Source of the DNA: Neoechinorhynchus agilis
Taxonomy: Eukaryota > Animalia > Acanthocephala
Assembly (NCBI GenBank): GCA_051530055.1
Contig: CM121341.1
Location: 6,674,784-6,738,783 of the forward strand
Reading direction: 5' to 3'
Length of the DNA: 64,000 nucleotides
Below, piece after piece: positions 5,810 through 59,317 of this stretch. The position numbers were made by a program, and so were the translations under genes. How positions within the stretch are numbered: position 1 is the first letter of the stretch; every line of letters starts with the position of its first letter. The notes beneath the pieces were generated by a model. That model was given only the letters and a program-made list of their open reading frames with translations, was not told where the DNA came from and made no database searches.

Positions 5810-5884
5810 GTATAAAAGAAATTTTAAAACTTTACTGGATAAAATACATAATTTATTAGAAACAAAAACGCGCGACGTTTTTCC

Positions 5885-8164: not shown

Positions 8165-8599
8165 GTGACCCGTAAATCGTTGGTTTTTTCACTTATTTTT
8201 GTGGAACATTCCATGATACGAAACTGAGAAAAACACTTATAATATTTGGGATCAGGCCATGACTCGATGCTTTGCATCGCTCAACTCCTAGAAAGGTTGC
8301 TGTTTTGCCTGGTTCTCAATAAATCCTTTTACGGCTTTGGAATAAACGACGCACAATGTCGATCATTGCGGCCCGGAGAAAGCATAACTCCTTTGCTGCT
8401 TTTCTAAAAGCCCTTAAAAATTATGCTCTGTGATTTGAGAAAATAATAACGACACATTTATTTGCACAAAGAATGGGAACCGAGTACCTTTGGACACTCT
8501 ACACATTTTTTGAATGAATGTTGATTTTGGAGTGGATAACAGGTTCGGTCGGGTTCGAAAGTTTATGGTTTTTGTTGGAGAGTTTGTGAGGTTGGGTCT

Positions 8600-12559: not shown

Positions 12560-14250
12560 ACATTGTTAACACGAAAGAAAGAGAATGCTTCCAATAATGA
12601 CGTATCAAGTAAAAGAATCAGAATTGAAACACTCAACCAATAGCAAAAAAACAAATAAGAAGCACGTTTAAAAAACCCAATATTACAAGAAAATCCGGAG
12701 AAAAAATTTGAACACGAAAGAAAGAGAATGCTTCCGATAATGACGTATCACGTAAAAGAATCAGAATTGAAACACTCAACCAATAATGACGTATCAAGTA
12801 AAAGAACCAGAATTGAAACACTCAACCAATAGCAAAAAAACAAATAAGAAGCACGTTTAAAAAACCCAATATTACAAGAAAATCCGGAGAAAAAATTTGA
12901 ACACGAAAGAAAGAGAATGCTTCCAATAATGACGTATCAAGTAAAAGAATCAGAATTGAAACACTCGACCAATAGCAAAAAAACAAATAAGAAGCACGTT
13001 TAAAAAACCCAATATTACAAAAATCCGGAGAAAAAATTTGAACACGAAAGAAAGAGAATGCTTCCAATAATGACGTATCAAGTAAAAGAATCAGAATTGA
13101 AAAACTCGACCAATAATGACGTATCAAGTAAAAGAACCAGAATTGAAACACTCAACCAATAGCAAAAAACAAATAAGAAGCACGTTTGAAAAACAAATGT
13201 GACCAGAAAAAACCGAAAAAAGAAAAAATTTGAACACGAAAGAAAGAGAATGCTTCCAATAATGACGTATCAAGTAAAAGAATCAGAATTGAAAAACTCG
13301 ACCAATAATGACGTATCAAGTAAAAGAACCAGAATTGAAACACTCAACCAATAGCAAAAAAACAAATAAGAAGCACGTTTAAAAAACCCAATATTACAAG
13401 AAAATCCGGAGAAAAAATTTGAACACGAAAGAAAGAGAATGCTTCCAATAATGACGTATCAAGTAAAAGAACCAGAATTGAAACACTCAACCAATAGCAA
13501 AAAAACAAATAAGAAGCACGTTTAAAAAACCCAATATTACAAGAAAATCCGGAGAAAAAATTTGAACACGAAAGAAAGAGAATGCTTCCAATAATGACGT
13601 ATCAAGTAAAAGAATCAGAATTGAAACACTCAACCAATAGCAAAAAAACAAATAAGAAGCACGTTTAAAAAACCCAATATTACAAGAAAATCCGAAGAAA
13701 AAATTTGAACACGAAAGAAAGAGAATGCTTCCGATAATGACGTATCAAGTAAAAGAATCAGAATTGAAACACTCGACCAATAATGACGTATCAAGTAAAA
13801 GAATCAGAATTGAAACACTCAACCAATAGCAAAAAAACAAATAAGAAGCACGTTTGAAAAACAAATGTGACCAGGAAAAAACCCAAAAAAGAAAAAATTT
13901 GAACACGAAAGAAAGAGGATGCTTCCGATAATGACGTATCAAGGAAAAGAATAAGCATTGAAAAACTCGATCGATCACAAAAAAATAAGAAACGCGTTCA
14001 AAAAACGAATATTATCAGATAAAAATCTGAAAAAGGCTGATCGAACCGAACATCTAAACAGGAAAAGAGAATGCGTCCAATAATGACGTAGTGAGTAAAA
14101 AAAGAGAGCAATCGATCACGATTTGAATAAAAAAACGTTCAAAAACCCACCAGGCCAGATTAAAAATCTGGAAAAAGATTTGATAGAACATTTGAATACA
14201 AAAGAAAGAGAACTCTTCCAGTAATGACGTGATAAGTAAAAAAAAGAGAG
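12560..14250. repeat. Tandem array, 143-bp unit with optional 46-bp internal duplication (189-bp variant), degenerating rightwards
   Basis: aacacgaaag recurs at 12568, 12711, 12900 and onward. The subunit ccaataatgacgtatcaagtaaaagaa(c/t)cagaattgaaacactc has 46-bp spacing (tgacg at 12741 and 12787). Confidence 0.95.
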
Positions 14251-22880: not shown

Positions 22881-23059
22881 AAATCTCTGCATTTAGTTTT
22901 TATCAAGCAGAGAGATATTTTGGATGAGCGATGGCTTTAGCCACGCTTCACATCGAACTATTAGAGATAAGGTTTTTAAACATAAGAAAATGTAGGCCGG
23001 TTTGGACGTTTTTAGACAATACATAATTTATTAGAAACAAAAACGCGCGACGTTTTTCC

Positions 23060-25339
23060 TTACACATTAGTCATTGTGGACACTTCACTATGTGGCACAT
23101 CGACGAAACTGTAATCTCCTTTGTAGATACTCAAATTGCCAAAATGCCGTTGCTTCCTGTATCGAGATAGCCAAGGATTTTTAGCTAGCATCGTAAACAG
23201 GTAGAACCTGAACATAACTCGTCTCCTCATAAAGTATTTTGCCATTTCCCTATTTATCACTAAGCCACAATTTCCTCCACGTTGGAATTTTAGACGACTA
23301 ACGAGGGCCTGTCGCTCGGACCGTTGATCAGCAATGCTGAGCTTTACCAAATCGCAAAACACTAGCACTGAAGGATTCGTCTGCATTGATTCCAGATGAA
23401 TCCAGCAGACGTAAGAAGAATATCCTTTGTCGTAGACCTCCAATCCTCGTCCAAAAATACTCTGATCGATTCTAGGGAGGAAGATAATCGATGCCAAGGC
23501 GGTCTGAGCGATTCTCGAAAAGCACACAACCATTCCAACAAAGCAGTCGAAGAAAAGGTTGAAGAAATTGAAGATAAAGAGGAGTTGGGTATTGTGGATT
23601 TCTGGACTGTTCCCATAGTTTGAGGTGAACAAAGTATTGGTCAGTATTTTGATAAGGACGAGCTTAAGGACGAGAAGGACCGTCATAGGTAGCATTGAAC
23701 GGACAATCAACTCAAAAACATTCACGACATTCATCAGATTTCTGAAGAAAACATAAAGAATGAACATCATTGAAAGGATAAGAACGTAACCCCAAATGAC
23801 ATATCCGATCATGAATCCTGGAAAATGAAGTGCTCTTGTAAGGACACTTCTATTTTTGAATTTTCGTCTTTCAGGAATATCCACGAATTTTCCTTTATAG
23901 GCGTTCAACAAACATCGACGGTATTTCCTCATTCCCGCGATCAGCTGAACGCTACAAACTAAAGCGCAAATCACATTAATAACGCGGAGATCCCGTACCA
24001 TTTTTTGTCTTACTTTTTCTTCAAGATCAAAGACTTTGATTCCAGGAAATATTTGAATTAATGAATTGACTGTGACGAACTGAAGGATACTATAGATTTC
24101 ATCGATCACTTTTTGGGAGTTTTGTAATACCCAGAAGGAAAATTGGTAAATTAATGTAAATGAAATGAAATACAGATGCAAGATTTGTTTTGAGAATTTG
24201 AAACTGATTTTTTGTCCTTTGTTCATTAATTGGTTAACGTGACGATACTCTGATTGAAGATCGTCGTCCTTTAGAAGCCAAGACACAAAAGATTGCTTGT
24301 TTGTTTTCCGTTTAAAGTCAATCAAAGTGGCGAAGAAGAGAACTGTGAGACGAATGGCGAGTATGCAAGAGTAAAAGTAGTACGGCATTTGTCTTAACAT
24401 TTTTAACTTGAGTGCATCCTTGGAGAGTGGAAGACAACTCTGGCACATTGTTTCTCTTTTTTGAGAAACGTTTGTGAATGTTGCACTTAAATTATTGCTT
24501 TTAATTAAAAAAATCTGCCTTGATTTAGGACAATAAGCATCCATTGCTGTTTGAAAGAAGATCTCTGTCCACATAAACAATGCGCTTAATCCGTAACAAA
24601 TAAAATTGTGCGGCCTAAGTTCAAGAGACATGAGAATCGGTAGATACCGAATTCCTATAAGAACGACTATTCCTGCTTGTCTGAAAAGATTTAAAAGCGG
24701 ACCGTGGTCGTTTGTCGTAGTTATTATTAATTTCTCAAAGGAATGCAGCACTTCCAAAGCCAAGATTCCATAAATGCACACCGAGTCGAAACGATTCGTT
24801 TTTGTAAAAGGATTGTAGACAAATCTTTTTGACATTCGTCCGCGACTTTCTGATCGCATTCGGATCATCTTGAGAGAACTGTACAAGGCCAGTATCAGAA
24901 ATATTGGAAGGGTTATCTTATTGATTGGTGTTCTATAGAACTCAATGAGAGAATCGATTCGCGCAAAGGTGCATATCGGCAGAAGTTCCAAATGATCATT
25001 GTTTGTTTTCTCCAATTGAATTCGTCTTGATTGGTAAATAAAAGTTATGCATAAAATCACAATCATCATTGACATAAACATTGGCAAAGTCTTTACAAGT
25101 CCTCGCTTTAAATTTATAAAAGTAGTCCATCTTCGTGCATTCGGAATGCAGCCCTTTTCCTCGACGCGAGAATAAATCTCGATTCTGGACGAAGGTTTCC
25201 TTCCGAATGATTCTGGAATTACACTGTAAACTTGTTTTTCGCTGCCCATTGCATCCATGAATAACTTATTGAACGTTTCTTTTCTGTGCTCGAATTGAGT
25301 CGCACCGAAACAACTGACGGGTACGTTTTTCGCGTCCAC
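23060..25339 (-). CDS. STRA6: STRA6-like protein, copy 2 (protein identical to copy 1)
   Basis: The ORF-track translation is identical to 5885-8164 at offset 17175. One synonymous difference was seen (6746 a versus 23921 g). Confidence 0.88.
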   Translation of the reverse strand: MDAKNVPVSCFGATQFEHRKETFNKLFMDAMGSEKQVYSVIPESFGRKPSSRIEIYSRVEEKGCIPNARRWTTFINLKRGLVKTLPMFMSMMIVILCITFIYQSRRIQLEKTNNDHLELLPICTFARIDSLIEFYRTPINKITLPIFLILALYSSLKMIRMRSESRGRMSKRFVYNPFTKTNRFDSVCIYGILALEVLHSFEKLIITTTNDHGPLLNLFRQAGIVVLIGIRYLPILMSLELRPHNFICYGLSALFMWTEIFFQTAMDAYCPKSRQIFLIKSNNLSATFTNVSQKRETMCQSCLPLSKDALKLKMLRQMPYYFYSCILAIRLTVLFFATLIDFKRKTNKQSFVSWLLKDDDLQSEYRHVNQLMNKGQKISFKFSKQILHLYFISFTLIYQFSFWVLQNSQKVIDEIYSILQFVTVNSLIQIFPGIKVFDLEEKVRQKMVRDLRVINVICALVCSVQLIAGMRKYRRCLLNAYKGKFVDIPERRKFKNRSVLTRALHFPGFMIGYVIWGYVLILSMMFILYVFFRNLMNVVNVFELIVRSMLPMTVLLVLKLVLIKILTNTLFTSNYGNSPEIHNTQLLFIFNFFNLFFDCFVGMVVCFSRIAQTALASIIFLPRIDQSIFGRGLEVYDKGYSSYVCWIHLESMQTNPSVLVFCDLVKLSIADQRSERQALVSRLKFQRGGNCGLVINREMAKYFMRRRVMFRFYLFTMLAKNPWLSRYRKQRHFGNLSIYKGDYSFVDVPHSEVSTMTNV

Positions 25340-25784
25340 GTGACCCGTAAATCGTTGGTTTTTTCACTTATTTTTGTGGAACATTCCATGATACGAAACT
25401 GAGAAAAACACTTATAATATTTGGGATCAGGCCATGACTCGATGCTTTGCATCGCTCAACTCCTAGAAAGGTTGCTGTTTTGCCTGGTTTTCAATAAATC
25501 CTTTTACGGCTTTGGAATAAACGACGCACAATGTCGATCATTGCGGCCCGGAGAAAGCATAACTCCTTTGCTGCTTTTCTAAAAGCCCTTAAAAATTATG
25601 CTCTGTGATTTGAGAAAATAATAACGACGCATTTATTTGCACAAAGAATGGGAACCGAGTACCTTTGGACACTCAAAAACAGCCGACTACACATTTTTTG
25701 AATGAATGTTGATTTTGGAGTGGATAACAGGTTCGGTCGGGTTCGAAAGTTTATGGTTTTTGTTGGAGAGTTTGTGAGGTTGGG

Positions 25785-25900
25785 ATCTCCTTGCGGTTTG
25801 GACGGGCCTCAAAGGACAGGATAGCCGTAAGTGAGGACAAGACGCCAGCAACGCCTATGGTGAAGGATAGAGCGATCGAGGATCTTGCAGTTAATGTATT
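25785..25900 (-). mobile_element. Fragment of the same LINE family as 8600-9290
   Basis: ttgcggtttggacgggcctcaaaggacaggatagccgta matches 8856-8895 (ttgcggtttggacaggcctcaaaggacgggatagccgta); minus strand reads LTYGYPVL*GPSKPQ. Confidence 0.7.
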
Positions 25901-26019: not shown

Positions 26020-26845
26020 ACAAAACTAACAAACATATAATGATGAATACAGGCTTCTAAGCGAATTATCCAAATTCAATCGAATATTTTTTATCGAAGT
26101 TTATGATCAAAACATCGCGAACAAAGTATTATTCATCCAGAGAGAATCCTTCAAGGACGATAAAGTTGGCGATGTTGAGATCACAATCCCTTAGACAAAA
26201 AATATTTTATTGAATTAAGATATTTCGCAAAGAAAACTTCGTCTCGTCAGAACCCACGTCATAAAAACTAACAATGAATGATACAACCAGGCTTCTTCGC
26301 AAATTATCCAAATTCAATCGAATATTTTTTATCGAAGTTTATGATCAAAACATCGCGAACAAAGTATTATTCATCCAGAGAGAATCCTTGAAGGACAATA
26401 AAGTTGGCGATGTTGAGATCACAATCCCTTAGACAAAAAATATTTTATTGAATTAAGATATTTCGCAAAGATAGCTTCGTCACATCAGAAGTTACGTCAT
26501 AAAAACTAACAATGAGTGATACAACGAGACGTCTTCGCAAATTATCCAAATTCAATCGAATATTTTTTATCGAAGTTTATGATCAAAACATCGCGAACAA
26601 AGTATTATTCATCCAGAGAGAATCCTTCAAGGACAATAAAGTTGGCGATGTTGAGATCACAATCCCTTAGACAAAAAATATTTTATTGAATTAAGATATT
26701 TCGCAAAAAAACTTTGTCTCATCAGAACTAACGTCATAAAAACTAACAATGAATGATACAACCAGGCTTCTTCGCGAATTATCCAAATTCAATCGAATAT
26801 TTTTCATCGAAGTTTATGATTAAAACATCGCTGACAAAGTATTAC
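26020..26845. repeat. Tandem array, about 238-bp unit, about 3.4 copies
   Basis: aattatccaaattcaatcgaatattttt recurs at about 26065, 26302, 26540 and 26777. Confidence 0.95.
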
Positions 26846-30189: not shown

Positions 30190-31231
30190 AATGAACAAAG
30201 AAGAAGACCATTTAACCCCTTTTTTAGAGCAATCTTAACTGGAAAGTGGCGTTTTTTAGCTTTGGATTACTTTGGCTTTTCGGAGTCAAAAAGCTCATGT
30301 TAGACATGAACTAAAAGCTAATCACTGTCGCATCGAGCGAAAATTTATGGATATATAAATTAGTTTGTCAAAACGAGTTCGTTTTGCTGCATAATCATTT
30401 TGGCAAATGAACAAAGAAGATCCATGTAACCCCTTTTTTAGAGCAATCTTAACTGGAAAGTGGCATTTTTTAGCTTTGGATTACTTTGACTTTTCATGGT
30501 CAAAAAGCTCAAGTTAGACTTAAACTGAAAGCTAATCACTGTCGCATCGAGCGAAAATTTATGGATATATAAATTAGTTTGTCAAGAGTTCGTTTTGCTG
30601 CATAATCATTTTGGCAAATGAACAAAGAAGATCCATGTAACCCCTTTTTTAGAGCAATCTTAACTGGAAAGTGGCTTTTTTAGCTTTGGATTACTTTGAC
30701 TTTTCATGGTCAAAAAGCTCAAGTTAGACTTAAACTGAAAGCTAATCACTGTCGCATCGAGCGAAAATTTATGGATATATAAATTAGTTTGTCAAGAGTT
30801 CGTTTTGCTGCATAATCATTTTGGCAAATGAACAAAGAAGATCCATGTAACCCCTTTTTTAGAGCAATCTTAACTGGAAAGTGGCTTTTTTAGCTTTGGA
30901 TTACTTTGACTTTTCAGGGTCAAAAAGCTCAAGTTAGACATAAACTGAAAGCTAATCACTGTCGCATCGAGCGAAAATTTATGGATATATAAATTAGTTT
31001 GTCAAGAGTTCGTTTTGCTGCATAATCATTTTGGCAAATGAACAAAGAAGATCCATGTAACCCCTTTTTTAGAGCAATCTTAACTGGAAAGTGGCATTTT
31101 TTAGCTTTGGATTACTTTGACTTTTCATGGTCAAAAAGCTCAAGTTAGACTTAAACTGAAAGCTAATCACTGTCGCATCGAGCGAAAATTTATGGATATA
31201 TAAATTAGTTTGTCAAAAAGAGTTCGTTTTG
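30190..31231. repeat. Tandem array, 210-bp unit, 5 copies
   Basis: atgaacaaagaaga recurs at 30191, 30407, 30618, 30828 and 31038. The last unit abuts a MITE TIR. Confidence 0.95.
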
Positions 31232-39645: not shown

Positions 39646-40278
39646 TCATGTTTGTTCCATCCGTTCGGGCGCAAATACACACGTATCTTCGTCTATCCTT
39701 CTTCCCTTCATAATGCTCTGACAAGCTTCTCCAATTGAGTTCCACAGAGCTTGGAAATACTGACTGAACTCTCGAGCAATCTGCCTTCCTTCTCCGTTTT
39801 CTCTCCCCATAACAACTACATTTTCGTAGTTTCGGAGACTGATGTCGGTCATGTTCATTGAACCATTGAACACTACGTTTTCATCAATAATGATGAATTT
39901 ATGGTGCAATATGGGAGGATGTGGCGGTGTACGAATTACGACTCCGGCAGCGTACAATTCTTCGAAATTCTCAGACCTTGTTTGCTCTTGAAGTTGGCTG
40001 AAATCACATATCATTCGGACTGGAATATCGCGATATCTACACTTCTTGATCGAATTGAGTATTTCAGTGGAATCAATAGCAAACAAGGCGATTTGGACAC
40101 ACTTCACAGCATTCTCAATGGACGCACTAAGATCACGCATGAGTTCAAATGAGTTAGTGGGACAGAAATAGACTCGATCACCACATGGACGGTTCCTTTT
40201 GTGCTCCGTAGGGGAATATCGGGACAACGAAGGTAATCGTTTTGTAGCAATCGGTAACGATTCGTCGATTGATTTCAT
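39646..40278 (-). CDS. PLD6: PLD6/Zucchini/Nuc-family single-HKD nuclease or phospholipase
   Basis: LHHKFIIIDENVVFNGSMNMT...NYENVVV; IALFAIDS; PVRMICD; FSQYFQALW. Confidence 0.8.
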   Translation of the reverse strand: MKSIDESLPIATKRLPSLSRYSPTEHKRNRPCGDRVYFCPTNSFELMRDLSASIENAVKCVQIALFAIDSTEILNSIKKCRYRDIPVRMICDFSQLQEQTRSENFEELYAAGVVIRTPPHPPILHHKFIIIDENVVFNGSMNMTDISLRNYENVVVMGRENGEGRQIAREFSQYFQALWNSIGEACQSIMKGRRIDEDTCVFAPERMEQT

Positions 40279-40507
40279 GATCTAGAAAAAATCAAGCTTT
40301 AGCTTCTTTTGAAAAAAAAGACAGCCAAAAAAACATTTTCTAATCTATGTTTACCTATCACAACGAAGACAAATCTCAAAAAGTTGCATAAATGTATTGT
40401 CGGCGATTAAACATTTTTAAGAATAATATAGTCAAGATGCGACATCTCTGTATTTCGACGAATTTCGAACTAATTTTTTTAAGAACTGTGGCGTAATTTT
40501 TTTGCCA

Positions 40508-43500
40508 TTATATCCCAACATAGTTAAAGAGATTATATTTTAACATTCTAAACACTTTACCAAAGGCTATTTGGAAAGCCTTTGAAACTTGTCTAAGAAA
40601 ATAAATCTGTTCCTTTTCCGCGAGCTTGGTTTTGATTTGGTATGTTTTTATTGATCCTGATTCTACTTTTACGTGGAAATTACCTATCGTTACACATTTA
40701 AAGCAAAAATAAAAAAATTCCAATATACCCAAATCAATATTTTTGACACCATTTCCCGCTAAGAAGGTTTCGTTTACTTGAATTATTTGTTCGATTGACG
40801 AAGGAAATAAATCCTTTTTTTTGCAATGTTTGAATAAATCATCTAAAAACAATAAACTTACTTGCAAATTAAAATTAATTGCATTTTTGTCGTGCTTGAC
40901 AGGATCAATATGCTCCAATCGCAAGAGATAAACATTGGTGTCCCGATTCCTTAAGATTACTTCAAAGGACAGAAGATGGAGATTATACGGTAACGGTTGA
41001 ATTTTTGGCAAAGGTATAATCTCAAGTTTTTCTTTTTCTAAAAACACGATTGGGGTTGCTGCTTCGATGATCGCAAGTCTTCTTTGATTTGTTTCAGTGT
41101 TCTCAACAGGTCCAACAATAATCAAGTGTCGAACTAAAGAAGCTAAACGAAATTGTCAACAACGCATGCCGCTCACATAATACAGCTGATTCCTTTTCGA
41201 TGCCATCTTTCGAACCAATCACAGTCTCATTAAGCACTTCGTCAACCCCAAGTCCGTCATCTTTTACAGTGCGTCGATTTATCATGAGTTCGATTGTATT
41301 TCCTGGTTCATATGGTCGTTTGAACGAGTATCCACCTTGGGTCCGGTCGGTAACGACTCCGAAATGCGTTCTAGTATCGTTAATGCTGATTCGGTTGCAC
41401 ACTGGATAATAGTTCCCAGATATCGGTTCTGATTGATTAAAGGGATATGATCTAGAGTTTAACAAACGTTTTTGCATGTATCGGCAGTTGGAATCAGTGT
41501 ATTGTCGTTGTATCTTTATACAAAAATAACTGACTGTAAATTAAACTTGCATTGTTGGGAAACCCGAGGCCGAGAAAGTGCACATTTTAAAGAAATTGCA
41601 GGAAATGAAGAAGCTCAATCTCTCCGAAGATACGGCGCTTCTAAAACTCCTCTCCAGAATTTATATCCGTTGCGTATCTTATAAAAGCATCTCTTGAAAT
41701 GTTCGGGTTTAATCCCATATTACCGAGCACTCCAATAATCTCAACGAAATCCGAATTGCCGTAAATATTGAATGTAAGATTCGTAGAGAATGACCGACTA
41801 AATTGTAATTGTATGCTTTGTATCAATTTATTGGATGAACAAATCAATTGTTTTGGTCGTCCAAGTACTCGTTCTTCGCCTGAGCAGAATAGATACATTC
41901 CATCACAGTGACCACCTTAATGTTTAATTCAAACATTAAGTTTACAATTTTTATACCTTACCTTCGTAAGCTCCTACTTCAATTGATCCTTTGGTGCGCC
42001 GCAACGATTTTTTATCAATTAACTCAAATTCAAATTGGTCGATTTTTAATAAAATATTCTTTAGATCGCTATTTAAAATATCAAGATTTTAGTGAAATAT
42101 GACTAACCTCATTTTCAATAGTACATTCAAACTCATGGGTACAAAAATCATTGAAAGGTTCACTGCCGTCCACTTTACAAAGAAGATGTTTGAGGGAAAA
42201 AATGAGCAATTTGAAACTCACGTTCCATAGAAATATCGAAGGTAGAAAACGATAAAGGATCCAATTCCATTTCAAATATCAGCTCATGATTCGAATTAGA
42301 TTTCCTTTCCTCGATATATTTCACGTCATTTCGAGCAATCAACTTTTTTTCACTTTTTCAATATCTAACTAAATTTCCGAGACTATTACCTCGTTCTCAA
42401 CTCTTTGACCGCTTTCTTGATTCCTTACTGAGTATCGCAATCCGCTCACTGGGAGTCTTATAAGTTTTGTCACTTTCCATCCAGTAGGATTGAAGACAGC
42501 GACAGAAAACTAAATCATTTAAAAATGTGCGTATTGCTAGAACTTTACCTTTCGTAATTGCTCGCTTAACCAGCACTCGCTCACGTTCAATGTCGTTGAA
42601 CAAGTTGTTAGTTTTACAGATGTTAAATTTTTATTCAAAGAGACGAAATTAACCTGAAATTAGCAAACGACTTTTTGGATCTATTACTTAAATGCGAATT
42701 TCACCTCTGCTTCTTCCAAAGACTTGCATATGCGGCCAAGATAATCATTGGCTACCTTTTGTTTACAGGTTCCACTGAAAAAAAGATGAATATCTCTAAC
42801 TTAATTTACGTCTTTAAAGTAGCCAATCCCCTTTGACACGATTAAAAATATTATAAGTAAAAGATTTTGTTAACAGTTTTCTTGCATAAGCGGCTAAGAT
42901 AATTTTTTCTGGCTTTTGTTTACAGGTTCCACTGAAAAAAGATGAATATCTCTAACTTAATTTACGTCTTTAAAGGAGCCAATCCCCTTTAACAAAAAGT
43001 ATAGACTGCAAGTTTTGAAATACGATTAAAAATATTATAAGTAAAAGGTTTTGTTAACAGTTTTCTTGCATAAGTGGCTAAGATAATTATTTTCTGGCTT
43101 TTGTTTACACGTTCCACTGAAAAAAAGATGAATATCTCTAACTTAATTTACGTCTTTAAAGTAGCCAATCCCCTTTGACACGATTAAAAATATTATAAGT
43201 AAAAGATTTTGTTAACAGTTTTCTTGCATAAGCGGCTAAGATAATTTTTTCTGGCTTTTGTTTACAGGTTCCACTGAAAAAAGATGAATATCTCTAACTT
43301 AATTTACGTCTTTAAAGGAGCCAATCCCCTTTAACAAAAAGTATAGACTGCAAGTTTTGAAATACGATTAAAAATATTATAAGTAAAAGGTTTTGTTAAC
43401 AGTTTTCTTGCATAAGTGGCTAAGATAATTATTTTCTGGCTTTTGTTTACACGTTCCACTGAAAAAAAGATGAATATCTCTAACTTAATTTACGTCTTTA

Positions 43501-46500
43501 AAGTAGCCAATCCCCTTTGACACGATTAAAAATATTATAAGTAAAAGATTTTAACAGTTTTCTTGCATAAGCGGCTAAGATAATTTTTTCTGGCTTTTGT
43601 TTACAGGTTCCACTGAAAAAAGATGAATATCTCTAACTTAATTTACGTCTTTAAAGGAGCCAATCCCCTTTAACAAAAAGTATAGACTGCAAGTTTTGAA
43701 ATACGATTAAAAATATTATAAGTAAAAGGTTTTGTTAACAGTTTTCTTGCATAAGTGGCTAAGATAATTATTTTCTGGCTTTTGTTTACACGTTCCACTG
43801 AAAAAAGATGAATATCTCTAACTTAATTTACGTCTTTAAAGTAGCCAATCCCCTTTGACACGATTAAAAATATTATAAGTAAAAGATTTTGTTAACAGTT
43901 TTCTTGCATAAGTGGCTAAGATAATTTTTTCTGGCTTTTGTTTACAGGTTCCACTGAAAAAAGATGAATATCTCTAACTTAATTTACGTCTTTAAAGGAG
44001 CCAATCCCCTTTAACAAAAAGTATAGACTGCAAGTTTTGAAATACGATTAAAAATATTATAAGTAAAAGGTTTTGTTAACAGTTTTCTTGCATAAGTGGC
44101 TAAGATAATTATTTTCTGGCTTTTGTTTACACGTTCCACTGAAAAAAAGATGAATATCTCTAACTTAATTTACGTCTTTAAAGTAGCCAATCCCCTTTGA
44201 CACGATTAAAAATATTATAAGTAAAAGATTTTGTTAACAGTTTTCTTGCATAAGTGGCTAAGATAATTTTTTCTGGCTTTTGTTTACAGGTTCCACTGAA
44301 AAAAGATGAATATCTCTAACTTAATTTACGTCTTTAAAGGAGCCAATCCCCTTTGACACGATTAAAAATATTATAAGTAAAAGGTTTTGTTAACAGTTTT
44401 CTTGCATAAGTGGCTAAGATAATTATTTTCTGGCTTTTGTTTACACGTTCCACTGAAAAAAGATGAATATCTCTAACTTAATTTACGTCTTTAAAGTAGC
44501 CAATCCCCTTTGACACGATTAAAAATATTATAAGTAAAAGATTTTGTTAACAGTTTTCTTGCATAAGTGGCTAAGATAATTTTTTCTGGCTTTTGTTTAC
44601 AGGTTCCACTGAAAAAAGATGAATATCTCTAACTTAATTTACGTCTTTAAAGGAGCCAATCCCCTTTAACAAAAAGTATAGACTGCAAGTTTTGAAATAC
44701 GATTAAAAATATTATAAGTAAAAGGTTTTGTTAACAGTTTTCTTGCATAAGTGGCTAAGATAATTTTTTCTGGCTTTTGTTTACACGTTCCACTGAAAAA
44801 AGATGAATATCTCTAACTTAATTTACGTCTTTAAAGTAGCCAATCCCCTTTGACACGATTAAAAAAAGAATAAGTAAAAGGTTCTGTTAACGGTTTTCTT
44901 GCATAAGTGGCTAAGATAATTTTTTCTGGCTTTTGTTTACAGGTTCCACTGAAAAAAGATGAATATCTCTAACTTAATTTACGTCTTTAAAGGAGCCAAT
45001 CCCCTTTAACAAAAAGTATAGACTGCAAGTTTTGAAATACGATTAAAAATATTATAAGTAAAAGGTTTTGTTAACAGTTTTCTTGCATAAGTGGCTAAGA
45101 TAATTATTTTCTGGCTTTTGTTTACACGTTCCACTGAAAAAAGATGATATCTCTAACTTAATTTACGTCTTTAAAGTAGCCAATCCCCTTTGACACGATT
45201 AAAAATATTATAAGTAAAAGATTTTGTTAACAGTTTTCTTGCATAAGCGGCTAAGATAATTTTTTCGGCTTTTGTTTACAGGTTCCACTGAAAAAAGATG
45301 AATATCTCTAACTTAATTTACGTCTTTAAAGGAGCCAATCCCTTTAACAAAAAGTATAGACTGCAAGTTTTGAAATACGATTAAAAATATTATAAGTAAA
45401 AGGTTTTGTTAACAGTTTTCTTGCATAAGTGGCTAAGATAATTATTTTCTGGCTTTTGTTTACACGTTCCACTGAAAAAAAGATGAATATCTCTAACTTA
45501 ATTTACGTCTTTAAAGTAGCCAATTCCCTTTGACACGATTAAAAAAAGAATAAGTAAAAGGTTCTGTTAACGGTTTTCTTGCATAAGTGGCTAAGATAAT
45601 TTTTTCTGGCTTTTGTTTACAGGTTCCACTGAAAAAAGATGAATATCTCTAACTTAATTTACGTCTTTAAAGGAGCCAATCCCCTTTACACGATTAAAAA
45701 TATTATAAGTAAAAGGTTTTGTTAACAGTTTTCTTGCATAAGTGGCTAAGATAATTTTTTCTGGCTTTTGTTTACAGGTTCCACTGAAAAAAGATGAATA
45801 TCTCTAACTTAATTTACGTCTTTAAAGTAGCCAATCCCCTTTGACACGATTAAAAAAATTATAAGTAAAAGGTTTTGTTAACGGTTTTCTTGCATAAGTG
45901 GCTAAGATAATTTTTTCTGGCTTTTGTTTACAGGTTCCACTGAAAAAAGATGAATATCTCTAACTTAATTTACGTCTTTAAAGGAGCCAATCCCCTTTAA
46001 CAAAAAGTATAGACTGCAAGTTTTGAAATACGATTAAAAATATTATAAGTAAAAGATTTTGTTAGCAGTTTTCTTGCATAAGCGGCTAAGATAATTATTT
46101 TCTGGCTTTTGTTTACACGTTCCACTGAAAAACGTTAAATATCTCAAAAAAATTTTAGGTCTTAATAGCAGCAAATCCCCTCTGACAAAAAATATAGACT
46201 GCAAGTTTTGAAATACGAGTACAAAATATTTGAAATAAAAAAATATAATAATTAAAAATTTAAGATAATCATTTTCTGCCTTTTGTTTACAAGTTCCACT
46301 GTCGAAAAGATGAATAACTCTAACTTAATTTATATCTTAAAAGCAGCCAATACCTTTTCATCAAAAATATAGATTGCAAGCTTTGAAATACGATTACAAG
46401 CATTTGGAGTTAAAAATATTCAAATTAAACGTTTTGTCCGCAGCTTTCTTGTAAGTAAAAAGAGTGAAAACTTACGGAATGGCATCATGATGTTGAACAA

Positions 46501-48544
46501 CCGCATGACTTTCCTCTGTCAAATGTATAATTAAAGATTTGAAACGTTTTCTATTCACGTACCTAGGCTGAAATAATCCCAATCCTTGTTATCATTTAAA
46601 GTAAATCTTGATTTGATCATTTTATAAGCCTTCGATTTGGTTTCGGTAACATAAATGTTTCCCTTCATTACACTAACCCTTAAATAATCATATGCAGTCC
46701 GAATAAGTTTTTTGAGACCTGGTCGACTCGTGTAGTATCCCGTCCAGTACAATCCTTGTGAATGAGAATGCGGAACGAAATCGTTCCATCTTCTAACTAC
46801 ACTAATATTTAAATCCTTTAAGGATCGATAGACACTTTCCATAAAGCATGCTGGAGTCGAATAGAAGGCTTTAATGCTTGAATTGACCTATTGGTTCAAT
46901 TGTGCAGACGAAACTAAGTAAAAGGCGACCAACGAACCTGCTTGTTATTGAAAGCCTTGATAAGTTTATCCAGACTCTTGAACGAGTGCCAAGCATTTTG
47001 ATAATGAAAATCCGAGCCCATCGGGATCATAACGTGTCGAGAACTCGTTTCTTCGCTCTAGAGACAATAATTTCGAATATGTACTGAAGAGCGTCGAGGT
47101 CGACAAAGTCGTCTATAGGTAGAGCTGATTCAATCGATCTATCAGTATATTAAAAGATGGCAACGAAATATTTAAGGCGCTCTTTCAGTCCTATAGAAAT
47201 AAACTCTGAGTGAGTTGTGCTAAACTTACAATAGACATAGCTTCAACGGTTAGCGAATCAAGTTTGTCATCAATATTAGAAAATGAACTTTTGTCATCCT
47301 AAATGGAATATTAGCATCTACACAAAATATCTTGTGTTTCTTACAATAACAGGATCTTCATTGCAGAACTCATCAAAACATAAATTTTTGGGAGGGTTGT
47401 AGTGTCGTGGTATGTGAATAGTGTTGATTTTCCTCTCACGATCCGGCATCCACAAAAACTCGTGACTTCGAGTGTTGGCCATATTTTGAGCAGCGTAATG
47501 ATCGATCCTATTAATGAACATTCCTTTAAAACCCATATCATAAAATATTCTCGCGTGTTCAATGGAGTGTCCGAACGGATCGATTTGCCATGTCACGTTT
47601 GGCACATAGTTGAAATTAAGGTTCAGAAAACGCAATCCGAGTGCCATTTGTTCAATCACGCTCCCATAATGCGCACATGCTTCATCGTTGGAAACCCAGC
47701 CGCCTCCGACGATTTGCAACTGACCTTATTGAATGAAGAGAGTCTTGATTCAAAGAGTTCACAGTTACAAAAAAAATATTTGACTCTTAATCTATATACA
47801 AAGATGGCATCTCGAAAAATACACAATTTTAACTCATTAACTACACAGGCAGCAGTTTTCAGCCATTAATTTTTTGCGGGGAAAACAACTGCTGAAAATG
47901 AACGAACAACATAGTCGATTAAGCGACAAATAAGCTGCAAGATAATTTTAAAACTAGCCTTAATTGTTTAAGGAAGCAAATTATGGTCTATAATGTCGCA
48001 TAATACTTATTCTATTTGAATTTCCCGAGATTGCACGATTTAAAACCTACATAAGACACTGTGAAGTGTGTGTGTTAAACATTAAAGCATTACACTCGAT
48101 CATGGTCAGTACAAACCATTAGTTAGAAGCGATTTGACAGTGTGCTTCGTTGAATTCGATTGCCGCATCCACCATCTCCAAAAATAGGCCATTTCACAAA
48201 ATACGAATGTCTTATCGTGGTCCAATGTAAGCTCCTTCACAACAGAATCGAAAATGAACTGCACACCAGCATGTTGTATTTGATCGTTTACTTAAACGAT
48301 ATAGCAGTATAGAAAAATAATAAGATCTTCAAACATACGACCATAGTAATATTCTTCAACAGTTTTAAGCCATCCAACATCCATATGGGAATGTGGAATA
48401 ATATGGATGTTAAGTAGAGCATCAGAATTATGGATACATGTCTGAAAATTGGATGAAATGAGAATCACTGGAAACAAAAAGAAATCATACCTTCAGGGTA
48501 AAGATTAAAGAGGTCGTCAAAAGTAGTATCAAATAAGGTTTCAT
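40508..48544 (-). CDS. MAN2B1: Lysosomal alpha-mannosidase (GH38, MAN2B1-like), many exons; possibly disrupted by an insertion
   Basis: Signal peptide MKPYLILLLTTSLIF; IHIIPHSHMDVGWLKTVEEYY; GGGWVSNDEA; WQIDPFGHS; YWTGYYTSRP; QHHDAI|PGTCKQKVANDY; YTDSN; EPISGNYYPV; TDRTQGG; ELMINRR..KDDGLGV; LLRLEH. Confidence 0.9.
41500..41643. mobile_element. 140-bp insertion with TA target-site duplication inside a mannosidase coding exon
   Basis: On the minus strand, GEEF|TA-insert-TA|(Y)TDSN splits the conserved FYTDSN motif. TA lies at 41500-41501 and 41642-41643. Confidence 0.7.
42775..46420. repeat. Intronic satellite with alternating units of about 157 and 185 bp (higher-order repeat of about 340 bp), about 21 units
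   Basis: gttccactg recurs about 22 times between 42770 and 46300. The long units carry an extra aacaaaaagtatagactgcaagttttgaaa. Confidence 0.97.
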
Positions 48545-55169: not shown

Positions 55170-58100
55170 ACGGAATATGGAAAGGAATAAAACCGAAACC
55201 TCCACAAAAACGAGTAGCTTTAAGAACTTTCAGAATTAATAAAATAATTTTACTAGAGCGAACATTTGCTACTTTTAAGAATGTTTAATCCTAGAGACTA
55301 CAAAATAGAATTTTAAAACGGAGCTTCGGTAATTCAGCATCTAAACGCTCTAAGGGGATTGTCGGTGTTAATTTTTTTTATAAAACACCATTGTTTTGGC
55401 ATCCAATTGTTCAGGTTAAAAGTCAAAGCATGAAATTACCTGTGCCGTGGATGCGAGTAAATGAACTTTAAAATACCAATCAACTATCTTCACTTTTCCG
55501 TGTTGGTTCAATTACGACCTTTGTCACTCAGAGCAACAGCAATCATTGAACCAAATGGTAAAAAACCGATACCTCCACAAAAACGAGTAGCTTTATGAAC
55601 TTTCAGAATTAATAAAATAATTTTACTAGTGCGAACATTTGTTACTTTTAAGAATGTTTAATCCTAGACTACAAAATAGAATATTAAAACGGAGCTTCGG
55701 TAATTCAGCATCTAAACGCTCTAAGGGGATTGTCGGTGTTAATTTTTTTATAAAACACCATTGTTTTGGCATCCAATTGTTCAGGTTAAAAGTCAAAGCA
55801 TGAAATTACCTGTGCCATGGATGCGAGTAAATGAACTTTAAAGTACAAATCAACTGTCTTCACTTTTCCGTGTTGGTTCAATTACGAGTTTTGTCACTCA
55901 GAGCAACAGCAATCATTGAACCAAATGGTAAAAAACCGAAACCTTCATCAAAAACGAGTAGCTTTGTGAACTTTCAGAATTAATAAAATAATTTTACTAG
56001 AGCGAACATTTGTTACTTTTAAGAATGTTTAATCCTAAAGACTACAAAATAGAATATTAAAACGGAGTATCGGTAATTCGGCATCTAAACGCTCTAAGGG
56101 GATTGTCGGTGTTAATTTTTTTATAAAACACCATTGTTTTGGCATCCAATTGTTCAGGTTAAAAGTCAAAGCATGAAATTACCTGTGCCATGGATGCGAG
56201 TAAATGAACTTTAAAGTACAAATCAACTGTCTTCACTTTTCCGTGTTGGTTCAATTACGAGTTTTGTCACTCAGAGCAACAGCAATCATTGAACCAAATG
56301 GTAAAAAACCGAAACCTTCATCAAAAACGAGTAGCTTTGTGAACTTTCAGAATTAATAAAATAATTTTACTAGAGCGAACATTTGTTACTTTTAAGAATG
56401 TTTAATCCTAAAGACTACAAAATAGAATATTAAAACGGAGCTTCGGTAATTCAGCATCTAAACGCTCTAAGGGGATTGTCGGTGTTAATTTTTTTATAAA
56501 ACACCATTGTTTTGGCATCCAATTGTTCAGGTTAAAAGTCAAAGCATGAAATTACCTGTGCCATGGATGCGAGTAAATGAACTTTAAAGTACAAATCAAC
56601 TGTCTTCACTTTTCCGTGTTGGTTCAATTACGAGTTTTGTCACTCAGAGCAACAGCAATCATTGAACCAAATGGTAAAAAACCGAAACCTTCATCAAAAA
56701 CGAGTAGCTTTGTGAACTTTCAGAATTAATAAAATAATTTTACTAGAGCGAACATTTGTTACTTTTAAGAATGTTTAATCCTAAAGACTACAAAATAGAA
56801 TATTAAAACGGAGCTTCGGTAATTCAGCATCTAAACGCTCTAAGGGGATTGTCGGTGTTAATTTTTTTATAAAACACCATTGTTTTGGCATCCAATTGTT
56901 CAGGTTAAAAGTCAAAGCATGAAATTACCTGTGCCATGGATGCGAGTAAATGAACTTTAAAGTACAAATCAACTGTCTTCACTTTTCCGTGTTGGTTCAA
57001 TTACGAGTTTTGTCACTCAGAGCAACAGCAATCATTGAACCAAATGGTAAAAAACCGAAACCTTCACAAAAACGAGTAGCTTTGTGAACTTTCAGAATTA
57101 ATAAAATAATTTTACTAGAGCGAACATTTGTTACTTTTAAGAATGTTTAATCCTAAAGACTACAAAATAGAATATTAAAACGGAGTATCGGTAATTCGGC
57201 ATCTAAACGCTCTAAGGGGATTGTCGGTGTTAATTTTTTTATAAAACACCATTGTTTTGGCATCCAATTGTTCAGGTTAAAAGTCAAAGCATGAAATTAC
57301 CTGTGCCATGGATGCGAGTAAATGAACTTTAAAGTACAAATCAACTGTCTTCACTTTTCCGTGTTGGTTCAATTACGAGTTTTGTCACTCAGAGCAACAG
57401 CAATCATTGAACCAAATGGTAAAAAACCGAAACCTTCACAAAAACGAGTAGCTTTGTGAACTTTCAGAATTAATAAAATAATTTTGAGCGAACATTTGTT
57501 ACTTTTAAGAATGTTTAATCCTAAAGACTACAAAATAGAATATTAAAACGGAGCTTCGGTAATTCAGCATCTAAACGCTCTAAGGGGATTGTCGGTGTTA
57601 ATTTTTTTATAAAACACCATTGTTTTGGCATCCAATTGTTCAGGTTAAAAGTCAAAGCATGAAATTACCTGTGCCATGGATGCGAGTAAATGAACTTTAA
57701 AGTACAAATCAACTATCTTCACTTTTCCGTGTTGGTTCAATTACGAGTTTTGTCACTCAGAGCAACAGCAATCATTGAACCAAATGGTAAAAAACCGAAA
57801 CCTTCATCAAAAACGAGTAGCTTTGTGAACTTTCAGAAGCAATAAAATAATTTTACTAGAGCGAACATTTGTTACTTTTAAGAATGTTTAATCCTAAAGA
57901 CTACAAAATAGAATATTAAAACGGAGCTTCGGTAATTCAGCATCTAAACGCTCTAAGGGGATTGTCGGTGTTAATTTTTTTATAAAACACCATTGTTTTG
58001 GCATCCAATTGTTCAGGTTAAAAGTCAAAGCATGAAATTACCTGTGCCATGGATGCGAGTAAATGAACTTTAAAGTACAAATCAACTATCTTCACTTTTC

Positions 58101-58900
58101 CGTGTTGGTTCAATTACGAGTTTTGTCACTCAGAGCAACAGCAATCATTGAACCAAATGGTAAAAAACCGAAACGTTCATCAAAAACGAGTAGCTTTGTG
58201 AACTTTCAGAATTAATAAAATAATTTTACTAGAGCGAACATTTGTTACTTTTAAGAATGTTTAATCCTAAAGACTACAAAATAGAATATTAAAACGGAGC
58301 TTCGGTAATTCAGCATCTAAACGCTCTAAGGGGATTGTCGGTGTTAATTTTTTTATGAAACACCATTGTTTTGGCATCCAATTGTTCAGGTTAAAAGTCA
58401 AAGCATGAAATTACCTGTGCCATGGATGCGAGTAAATGAACTTTAAAGTACAAATCAACTATCTTCACTTTCCGTGTTGGTTCAATTACGAGTTTTGTCA
58501 CTCAGAGCAACAGCAATCATTGAACCAAATGGTAAAAAACCGAAACCTTCATCAAAAACGAGTAGCTTTGTGAACTTTCAGAATTAATAAAATAATTTTA
58601 CTAGAGCGAAAATTTGTTACTTTTAAGAATGTTTAATCCTAAAGACTACAAAATAGAATATTAAAACGGAGCTTCGGTAATTCGGCATCTAAACGCTCTA
58701 AGGGGATTGTCGGTGTTAATTTTTTTATAAAACACCATTGTTTTGGCATCCAATTGTTCAGGTTAAAAGTCAAAGCATGAAATTACCTGTGCCATGGATG
58801 CGAGTAAATGAACTTTAAAGTACAAATCAACTATCTTCACTTTTCGTGTTGGTTCAATTATGGGTTTTTGTCACTCAGAGTTATAGCAATCATTGAACAA
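55170..58900. repeat. Tandem array, about 373-bp unit, 10 highly homogeneous copies
   Basis: aaccga(a/t)acct recurs at about 55190, 55564, 55934, 56307, 56680, 57053, 57425, 57793, 58166 and 58538. Confidence 0.97.
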
Positions 58901-59317
58901 AACGATAAGCAAGATTTGCTAACAGACGATTGAATTTAATTGCCGGCCAAAAACTGCGCCACTTCCATGATGGCCATCGAAAATATTCCGCCATTATTAA
59001 ATTCAGTCAATCACGAAAATTGTGAAATCCAAACAAGAAAGTTAAGAGTAAATCTGAACACAAGGAAATGGCGCAGAGTAAACCCGATATTTCTACTCAA
59101 ATGCTCCTCGCTAAAACTAGAAGTTTGAAGATTGAATTGTTCATGTTTTTTATAGCGGAAAAATTGAAGGAATTTATTAAGGCCGATATTTCCGAACAAT
59201 TTTGTTTGAAGCCCAATTCTGTATCGAATTGTTGGACATTTTTCGGTTATAAAAACGAGATTAAAGATGTCGAATATATATTTAACATTGCTGATAAAGG
59301 TGAAGAAAATAAGAACT

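Follow-up and report, generated by a model that had tools for sequence, protein, structure and literature searches.

A tandem array of splice-acceptor and exon-start copies in intron 9 of an alpha-mannosidase gene of the acanthocephalan Neoechinorhynchus agilis

A row of identical splice sites within one intron has been described in the human F7 gene, where a 37-bp minisatellite occupies IVS7; the first repeat extends across the donor of exon 7, and the pseudo-donors that follow are identical, functional and silent (Borensztajn et al. 2006, PMC1557585). Other related systems are the decoy exons of retained introns, as in SF3B1 intron 4 and OGT (Parra et al. 2018, PMC6097662; PMC7373989), introns created or enlarged by tandem genomic duplication, as in the Rogers model (Hellsten et al. 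2011, PMC3265369) and in potato RdRp (PMC4974935), and the FGG exon 8-intron 8 duplication (PMC9052919). In this work, a stretch of 64,000 nt from N. agilis was analysed, an acanthocephalan fish parasite with a genome of 46.2 Mb of which 31.6% is coding (PMC12690905). The stretch, referred to as the window, covers positions 6,674,784 to 6,738,783 of contig CM121341.1 (assembly GCA_051530055.1), and all coordinates given below are counted from its first base. Intron 9 of a GH38 lysosomal alpha-mannosidase gene in this window was found to consist almost entirely of 21 head-to-tail copies of its own acceptor and of the start of the adjoining exon 10. The array is probably an intronic satellite that arose in place, as a by-product of DNA replication and recombination which is tolerated or mildly harmful, and not a device.

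The F7 minisatellite is the closest precedent, and the N. agilis array is the acceptor-side mirror image of it. In both cases the terminal repeat element spans an exon-intron boundary, and the authentic site lies beside a row of identical pseudo-sites. In F7, however, it is the donor side that is repeated and the authentic site comes first, whereas in N. agilis the repeated side is that of the acceptor and the authentic site would be met last. The 37-bp unit of F7 also contrasts with units of 156 and 185 nt which are present in 21 copies, form a higher-order dimer and have a branch region and a donor-like site of their own. Known decoy exons share with the N. agilis copies that they are cryptic, non-productive exons with splice signals in an intron of more than 1 kb and could engage the terminal splice sites. 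They occur, however, singly or in small numbers, are conserved between species and have been demonstrated to bind U2AF and to favour retention of the intron, and silence of the F7 pseudo-sites was likewise shown experimentally; the N. agilis decoys are about 20 near-identical, very young derivatives of the adjoining exon. As in the Rogers model, duplicated exon sequence is spliced out and thus becomes intron, but the N. agilis intron is old and was enlarged, and the duplicated block spans the 3' splice site. Small tandem duplications of a junction with competing identical splice sites are also seen in FGG-type cases; these are single duplications in patients, whereas the 21-fold array is found in the reference genome of a wild species. 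A limited literature search revealed no acceptor-side junction satellite, which is not proof of novelty.

To define the host gene, the annotated protein P0001 was threaded onto the DNA for the N-terminal exons, and the C-terminal half was built by hand, guided by tblastn. The earlier note, a reading of the bare sequence, had placed the array in the gene of an enzyme with an HHD metal-binding motif. This enzyme was identified as a GH38 alpha-mannosidase by Pfam (Glyco_hydro_38N, 1.9e-65; Alpha-mann_mid, 9.5e-13), by matches in PDB (6b9o at 2e-110; 1o7d chains A, C and D) and by alignment. The gene-model protein (about 975 aa) aligned over its whole length with enzymes of rotifer, fish and ant origin (34-35% identity) and kept all 183 invariant alignment columns, and its C-terminal 554 aa matched full-length homologues at 1e-47 with a coverage of 96-99%. 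Residues H35, H37, D39, D159, H401, H402 and D403 (HxHxD, D and HHD) correspond to invariant columns; by analogy with the bovine and human LAMAN structures they are the putative zinc ligands. Only one GH38 protein of N. agilis turned up in protein searches. The best match to the gene was a hypothetical protein of this species, whose 22-kb locus on CM121341.1 showed 100% identity to window 58544-36472. All 20 exons were open, the introns were of the GT-AG type throughout, and no lesion was seen in the gene. An in-frame TAG at 41643-41641 was dropped as a candidate pseudogene lesion, as a systematic scan found a canonical, frame-keeping GT-AG intron at 41647-41531. This 117-nt intron is the sole frame-keeping GT-AG choice at that place, and its use would add about nine residues (DYFCIKIQRQ) that are missing in homologues.

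Intron 9 stands out by its size. The N-terminal half of the gene has eight introns, of 46-50 nt plus 172 and 392 nt, and introns of 51, 39, 47, 49, 49, 46, 117, 43 and about 48 nt were modelled in the C-terminal half. The 17 other introns modelled thus range from 39 to 392 nt; the typical length of about 45 nt proposed in the earlier note agrees with 14 of them (39-51 nt) but not with the remaining three (117, 172 and 392 nt). The other long introns, at 47725-48116 (392 nt) and 47058-47229 (172 nt), contained no internal or junction duplication, and the intron-9 array is the sole junction duplication within the mannosidase gene.

The motif CAGTGGAAC was present 22 times in the window, in all cases on the minus strand between 46301 and 42777, and was absent from the remainder on either strand. 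The 22 copies represent 21 decoys plus the true acceptor, and Tandem Repeats Finder reported periods of 156, 185 and 340-342 nt across 42723-46230, with 93-99% matches overall (93-97% for the 156- and 185-nt periods, 96-98% for that of 340-342 nt). The central proposal of the earlier note, an intron made of about 21 copies of its own acceptor and exon start, was thereby borne out, as were the limits it gave for the 70-nt true exon and the 3.7-kb intron (Table 1). Its decoy peptides were also reproduced: the in-frame type of unit encodes GTCKQKPENNYLSHLCKKTVNKTFYL followed by a stop codon, the other type is 1 nt shorter and frameshifted, and the exon copy of unit 1, which begins at 46298, reads GTCKQKAENDYL. 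Unit 1 is the diverged, older copy which had been recognised nearest to the donor.

Starting from the donor, the units measure 174 and 185 nt and then mostly alternate between 154-157 and 184-185 nt. Short units have a 1-nt deletion in the exon copy, and long units retain a 29-nt spacer segment. Alternation of the two types, as described in the earlier note, is imperfect: three short units follow one another at positions 3-5, and hybrids are found at positions 10 and 12; sub-variants are common to units 5 and 9. Interior copies are 95-100% identical overall, and in the identity matrix the long units 6, 8, 10, 14, 16, 18 and 20 are about 100% alike, as are the short units 17, 19 and 21. With its head-to-tail copies and stable period the array is a tandem satellite, and with two subtypes per larger period, a homogenised interior and diverged edges it is organised as a higher-order repeat. 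Higher-order repeats of this kind are typical of alpha-satellite-type DNA, in which subtypes alternate likewise and edges diverge around a homogenised interior. The N. agilis array differs in that it extends over only 3.5 kb, lies inside a gene and originates from a coding junction.

The search for further copies gave no match to the unit elsewhere in the 64-kb window (best chance match, E = 0.2). The units approached no Rfam family near its gathering score, formed no stable fold (z = +1.05) and contained no tRNA. Looping of the RNA by inverted repeats was rejected, as only 14-nt chance matches were found. Intron 9 contains neither AATAAA nor ATTAAA, an absence that is uninformative because the intron effectively holds only about 340 nt of independent sequence.

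Table 1. Positions of the mannosidase gene, its intron-9 array, published gene models and smaller tandem arrays in the window (a slash marks a splice junction; PWM, position weight matrix)
Feature	Position	Strand	Remarks
GH38 lysosomal alpha-mannosidase gene	40508..48544	-	20 exons, about 975-985 aa; last two exons approximate
Exon 9	46476..46515	-	40 nt, ends ...EESHAVVQHHDAIP, phase 2; threading of P0001
Intron 9	42775..46475	-	3,701 nt; donor cc/GTAAGT, G at 46475; true acceptor tttttttcag/
True exon 10	42705..42774	-	70 nt, encodes (P)GTCKQKVANDYLGRICKSLEEAE; flanks tttttttcag/ and /gtgaaa
Intron 10	42654..42704	-	51 nt; donor gag/GTGAAAT, 7.6 bits
Segment I0	46299..46475	-	177 nt, donor to first acceptor; resembles ancestral intron
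Unit 1, oldest decoy	46125..46298	-	174 nt, 72-80% identical to others; weakened acceptor ttttcgacag
Unit 2, diverged long type	45940..46124	-	185 nt; 90-98% identical to interior units
Homogenised units 3-21	42775..45939	-	mostly dimers of about 341 nt (short + long)
Donor-like gac/GTAAATT, n = 20	last one 42803..42809	-	6.9 bits, PWM
Donor-like sites 1-10, G of GT	45973, 45817, 45662, 45506, 45321, 45166, 44982, 44826, 44642, 44486	-	
Donor-like sites 11-20, G of GT	44329, 44173, 43987, 43831, 43646, 43493, 43307, 43151, 42965, 42809	-	
ACOME3_001556	48544-46472	-	406 aa; ends ...HHDAIP, reads CCG TAA into intron-9 donor, stops
147-aa model	42228-41641	-	BRAKER model ending at in-frame TAG
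ACOME3_001554	41477-39646	-	last mannosidase exons fused to neighbouring PLD-like (PLDc_2) gene
Tandem array	12568-14014		periods 46/143/189/332 nt; beside RRM-Tudor ORF
Tandem array	26050-26844		period 238 nt; between ORFs
Tandem array	30190-31231		period 210 nt; beside NOB1-like and RPL7 ORFs

Comparison of the units with their surroundings supported the earlier proposal of a satellite derived from a coding junction: the spacer of the unit has its homologue in segment I0, which comprises the initial 177 nt of intron 9, and the rest is homologous to the beginning of exon 10. Between I0 and the long-unit spacer 114 of 138 aligned bases are identical (82.6%); homology starts at about base 28 of I0, and only the first 22-27 nt are unique. 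The exon similarity, estimated before at about 50 nt, was refined to exon bases 1-52, with identities of 43/52 and 44/51 to the exon copies of the units (83%). This part encodes residues conserved across animals, and the exon is therefore the source of the unit. At the junctions, the sequence is ...ATGCAAG/AAAACTG in the units, ...TTACAAG/AAAGCTG in I0 and ...ATGCAAG/TCTTTGG in the exon (here the slash marks the breakpoint), the microhomology CAAG being common to both breakpoints. An AG/GT within the duplicated exon part (AAAAG/GTAGCC) survives in the true exon only; the units read AAAAG/CC and unit 1 reads AAAAG/GC.

From these relationships we infer the mechanism of duplication, the order of events and the lack of an adaptive role. 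An ancient intron of about 177 nt between HHDAIP and GTCKQK would have been the starting point. One tandem duplication would then have copied a block of about 200 nt across the 3' splice site, comprising the last 150 or so intron nucleotides and exon bases 1-52, with breakpoints joined at the CAAG microhomology. The last copy, still contiguous with the remaining exon sequence and the exon donor, would have stayed the real exon, and the upstream copies would have turned intronic and drifted (VANDY to PENNY; loss of one base in the short type). The final step, at a much later time, would have been the amplification to about ten copies, presumably by unequal crossing-over, of a dimer made up of one long unit of 185 nt and one short unit of 156 nt from which 29 nt are deleted. 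The position of the real exon at the end of the row fits this scheme because only the last copy is attached to exon bases 53-70 and their donor. The 29-nt segment occurs in I0 and in units 1 and 2 as well, which makes the short unit a deletion derivative. The diverged edges, as opposed to an interior of about 100% identity, conform to the pattern of unequal crossing-over and indicate that amplification of the dimer was very recent. Growth of the intron from about 177 to 3,701 nt amounts to a factor of about 20.

The intron itself is old. Rotaria and the fish Merluccius have a single 110-nt exon in place of N. agilis exons 9 and 10, which had suggested a lineage-specific intron gain; this was rejected, as in Saccoglossus kowalevskii the codon and phase of intron 9 are those of an intron of about 123 nt (locus L004, 7246-7368). 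The shared position and phase mean that the intron is ancient and was enlarged, not created, in N. agilis. As Saccoglossus alone shares the HHDA-x/GT intron, it would have been lost separately in rotifers and in teleosts. Intron gain by tandem duplication was rejected likewise, in view of the Saccoglossus intron, the origin of the spacer from a pre-existing intron and the loss of AG/GT in the units. The position of intron 10 is conserved in Rotaria and Merluccius, and many mannosidase intron positions are common to N. agilis and Rotaria.

With regard to selection on the gene, exon 10 retains the motif VANDY, which is conserved from plants to vertebrates according to tblastn of homologues and alignment, where the units read PENNY or are frameshifted. 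Differences between exon and units are distributed unevenly, with none in 19 positions (bases 1-19) versus 8 in 33-35 positions beyond, a marginal result (Fisher p = 0.04). Divergence of the old copies amounts to 17-28%, but no break has arisen in the reading frame of about 2.9 kb. Preservation of VANDY and of the frame next to copies of that divergence indicates that the gene long remained functional in the presence of one or two decoys at least.

Splice signals were scored with a PWM derived from 15 other GT-AG introns of the mannosidase gene. The true acceptor scored 7.0 bits, the 19 homogenised decoys 5.9-7.0 bits and the acceptor of unit 2 7.3 bits; weaker decoy acceptors were the oldest one (4.9 bits) and one at 45134 with a one-base deletion (4.4 bits). 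In five decoy acceptors the 18-nt context is exactly that of the true site, and in 14 it deviates by a single T. The donor of intron 9 scored 4.7 bits, and the real donors of the gene 5.6-11.3 bits. Upstream, the true acceptor and decoy 20 share 436 nt without a single difference; downstream, bases 1-19 of the true exon are identical to the short-type decoys, and differences from the units occur at eight sites within bases 20-52. The real site is therefore distinguishable only beyond exon base 19. Candidate discriminators are the diverged exon body, the exon's own donor at +70 (7.6 bits) and the intron that follows, which has a normal length of 51 nt and is spliceable; the intron-10 donor is the only splice signal which the decoys do not share.

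The units had been described as lacking the downstream donor. This holds for the exon's own donor, but 20 units carry the donor-like site GAC/GTAAATT listed in Table 1. The site is missing in unit 1 and in I0, which reads GATATAAAT where the units read GACGTAAAT. It is located 33-35 nt upstream of the next acceptor (the shortest real intron seen has 39 nt) and would delimit, together with the decoy acceptor, putative pseudo-exons of 119-123 or 150-151 nt as judged by the same 15-intron PWM. Simple exon definition therefore does not obviously favour the true exon. Of the two mechanisms suggested in the earlier note, exon definition or recursive splicing, selection by downstream sequence was supported by the identical 436-nt flank, and an exon-definition-type choice of the true exon may operate. 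Recursive splicing was not supported because the junction ...ATTCC/TGGAAC regenerates no 5' splice site; the first GT lies 8 nt into the decoy, and its use would add 8 nt.

Joining of the intron-9 donor to each of the 21 decoys in silico resulted in a premature stop after 12-85 codons in 21 of 21 cases, in keeping with the expectation that use of any decoy truncates the enzyme just after the HHD motif. A productive mRNA would need pairing of the donor at 46475 with the 22nd acceptor at 42775, and decoy-spliced transcripts would be expected to be lost or to yield truncated, inactive enzyme. The predicted products are distinguished by their junctions: (i) in the true exon 9-10 junction, ...GATGCCATTCC is joined to TGGAACCTGTAAACAAAAGGTAGCC; (ii) with decoys 2-21, ...GATGCCATTCC is joined to TGGAAC, C or G, and TGTAAACAAAAGCCAG; (iii) with decoy 1, it is joined to TGGAACTTGTAAACAAAAGGCAG; (iv) the unspliced intron-9 donor has the context ...ATTCCGTAAGTTTTC.

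Three published models over 39646-48544 (minus strand) correspond to the one alpha-mannosidase gene (Table 1), and exons 10-12 (42774-42390) are without any published gene model. Annotation of the genome was done by masking with RepeatMasker first, followed by RNA-seq-guided BRAKER (PMC12690905), and masking of the repeats before BRAKER is a sufficient technical cause of the split models. The N. agilis entries in two protein searches were BRAKER fragments only, with no transcript-derived protein among them, and the supplement of the N. agilis genome paper contained no mannosidase entry. The array thus illustrates how such repeats break automated gene models, one gene being converted into three fragments of which one is fused to a neighbour.

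Several points weigh against a working gene that tolerates the array. Amplification was too recent for the intact frame to prove that the gene works with 21 decoys. The BRAKER model stops at the intron-9 donor, which may reflect that few reads cross the intron. The donor-like sites of the decoys are as strong as real donors, and in a genome with introns of about 47 nt, intron definition together with co-transcriptional order would favour the first acceptors. Moreover, the PWM is limited to 15 introns, and the conclusions on splicing were drawn from the genomic sequence and homologues, so that junction usage is predicted. On such grounds recent amplification might have crippled or killed the gene by decoy use or intron retention, leaving a young pseudogene or a strong hypomorph; with a TAA two bases into the retained intron, the product would be a fragment of about 406 aa or no protein. 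The end of ACOME3_001556 inside the donor, the unmodelled exons 10-12 and the split C-terminal half with its fusion to the PLD-like gene are consistent with this, as are some 20 decoys with full-strength acceptors and plausible donors, units of up to 100% identity, which leave no time for decay to show, and the lack of many conserved genes in acanthocephalans (PMC12690905). However, none of the 20 exons is interrupted, the splice sites are canonical and no invariant residue is missing, the gene came through a long period in which it had one or two decoys at least (VANDY is kept, at a divergence of 17-28% for unit 1 and I0), repeat masking accounts for the annotation break, and loss of the sole GH38 gene found would remove lysosomal alpha-mannosidase altogether. 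A crippled gene is thus a possible but rather doubtful outcome.

At the other extreme, the decoys might form an adaptive decoy-exon or acceptor-trap device, a "rheostat" in which they would engage the donor and shunt transcripts towards decay or intron detention, with enzyme output tuned by copy number. With acceptors of 5.9-7.0 bits, a donor-like site of 6.9 bits and a length of 119-151 nt, the units do resemble complete pseudo-exons; they lie in an intron of more than 1 kb, which is the setting of the decoy-exon model (PMC6097662), a possible mode of action, and arrays of this kind readily change copy number. An adaptive role nevertheless appears improbable: nothing speaks for conservation, regulation or polymorphism, amplification was very recent and bears the ordinary signature of unequal crossing-over, and a housekeeping lysosomal hydrolase is an unlikely target for tuning. 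In addition, other arrays with units of 140-370 nt, all between long ORFs, contribute to the roughly 16% of the window that is tandem repeat, and the birth of arrays therefore looks like a general mutational habit of the region. The chance that the array at present acts as a working, copy-number-tunable acceptor trap which sends transcripts to decay or nuclear detention would be similarly slight. It is very unlikely that the array or its copy number is an artefact. The assembly is a MaSuRCA hybrid of Illumina data and ONT reads (R9.4 chemistry, filtered to 5 kb or more, from a pool of about 50 worms) with a very small share of HiFi data (PMC12690905), and T6 versus T7 homopolymer differences between units could be errors; on the other hand, the ONT reads exceed the 3.7-kb array, the flanks are unique coding exons, and consistently linked variants (two types, sub-variants, diverged edges) are not made by collapse or expansion. 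Least credible of all is a dispersed repeat or transposon fragment that merely resembles the exon. The unit is colinear, in order and orientation, with the start of the intron and exon bases 1-52, the last copy continues seamlessly into the exon, the exon part encodes animal-conserved residues, and the rest of the window contains no other copy, which also settles for this window the check on dispersed copies proposed in the earlier note. A locally born satellite, tolerated or mildly harmful, is the reading retained here.

Apart from the mannosidase gene, the window contains further repeats. A second large array at 55189-58902 consists of ten 373-nt units of 98% identity whose sequence is unrelated to the intron-9 unit; it is located about 0.7 kb downstream of a semaphorin-domain gene, and no gene model lies over it. 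This array, that of intron 9 and the smaller ones of Table 1 together occupy about 16% of the window, and the genome as a whole has been characterised as very compact. A segmental duplication of 2.77 kb (5843-8599 and 23018-25788; 99.4% identity) carries in each copy an intronless 759-aa ORF of the retinol-binding-protein receptor family (STRA6-like, PF14752, 5.7e-33).

If the array did work as an acceptor trap, rapid gain and loss of units would set the level of lysosomal alpha-mannosidase in a parasite with a streamlined 46-Mb genome. Such a trap would, moreover, be the first natural case to parallel the F7 system on the acceptor side, and would reveal by what means a spliceosome adapted to introns of 47 nt selects the last one among 22 identical 3' splice sites. 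The locus records the individual steps by which a satellite can grow from a coding junction and enlarge an intron about 20-fold. The array also represents a natural experiment on the choice of 3' splice sites, with 22 acceptors that share branch regions, T-runs and AGs, of which only the last can give a working enzyme, in a host whose introns normally measure about 47 nt.

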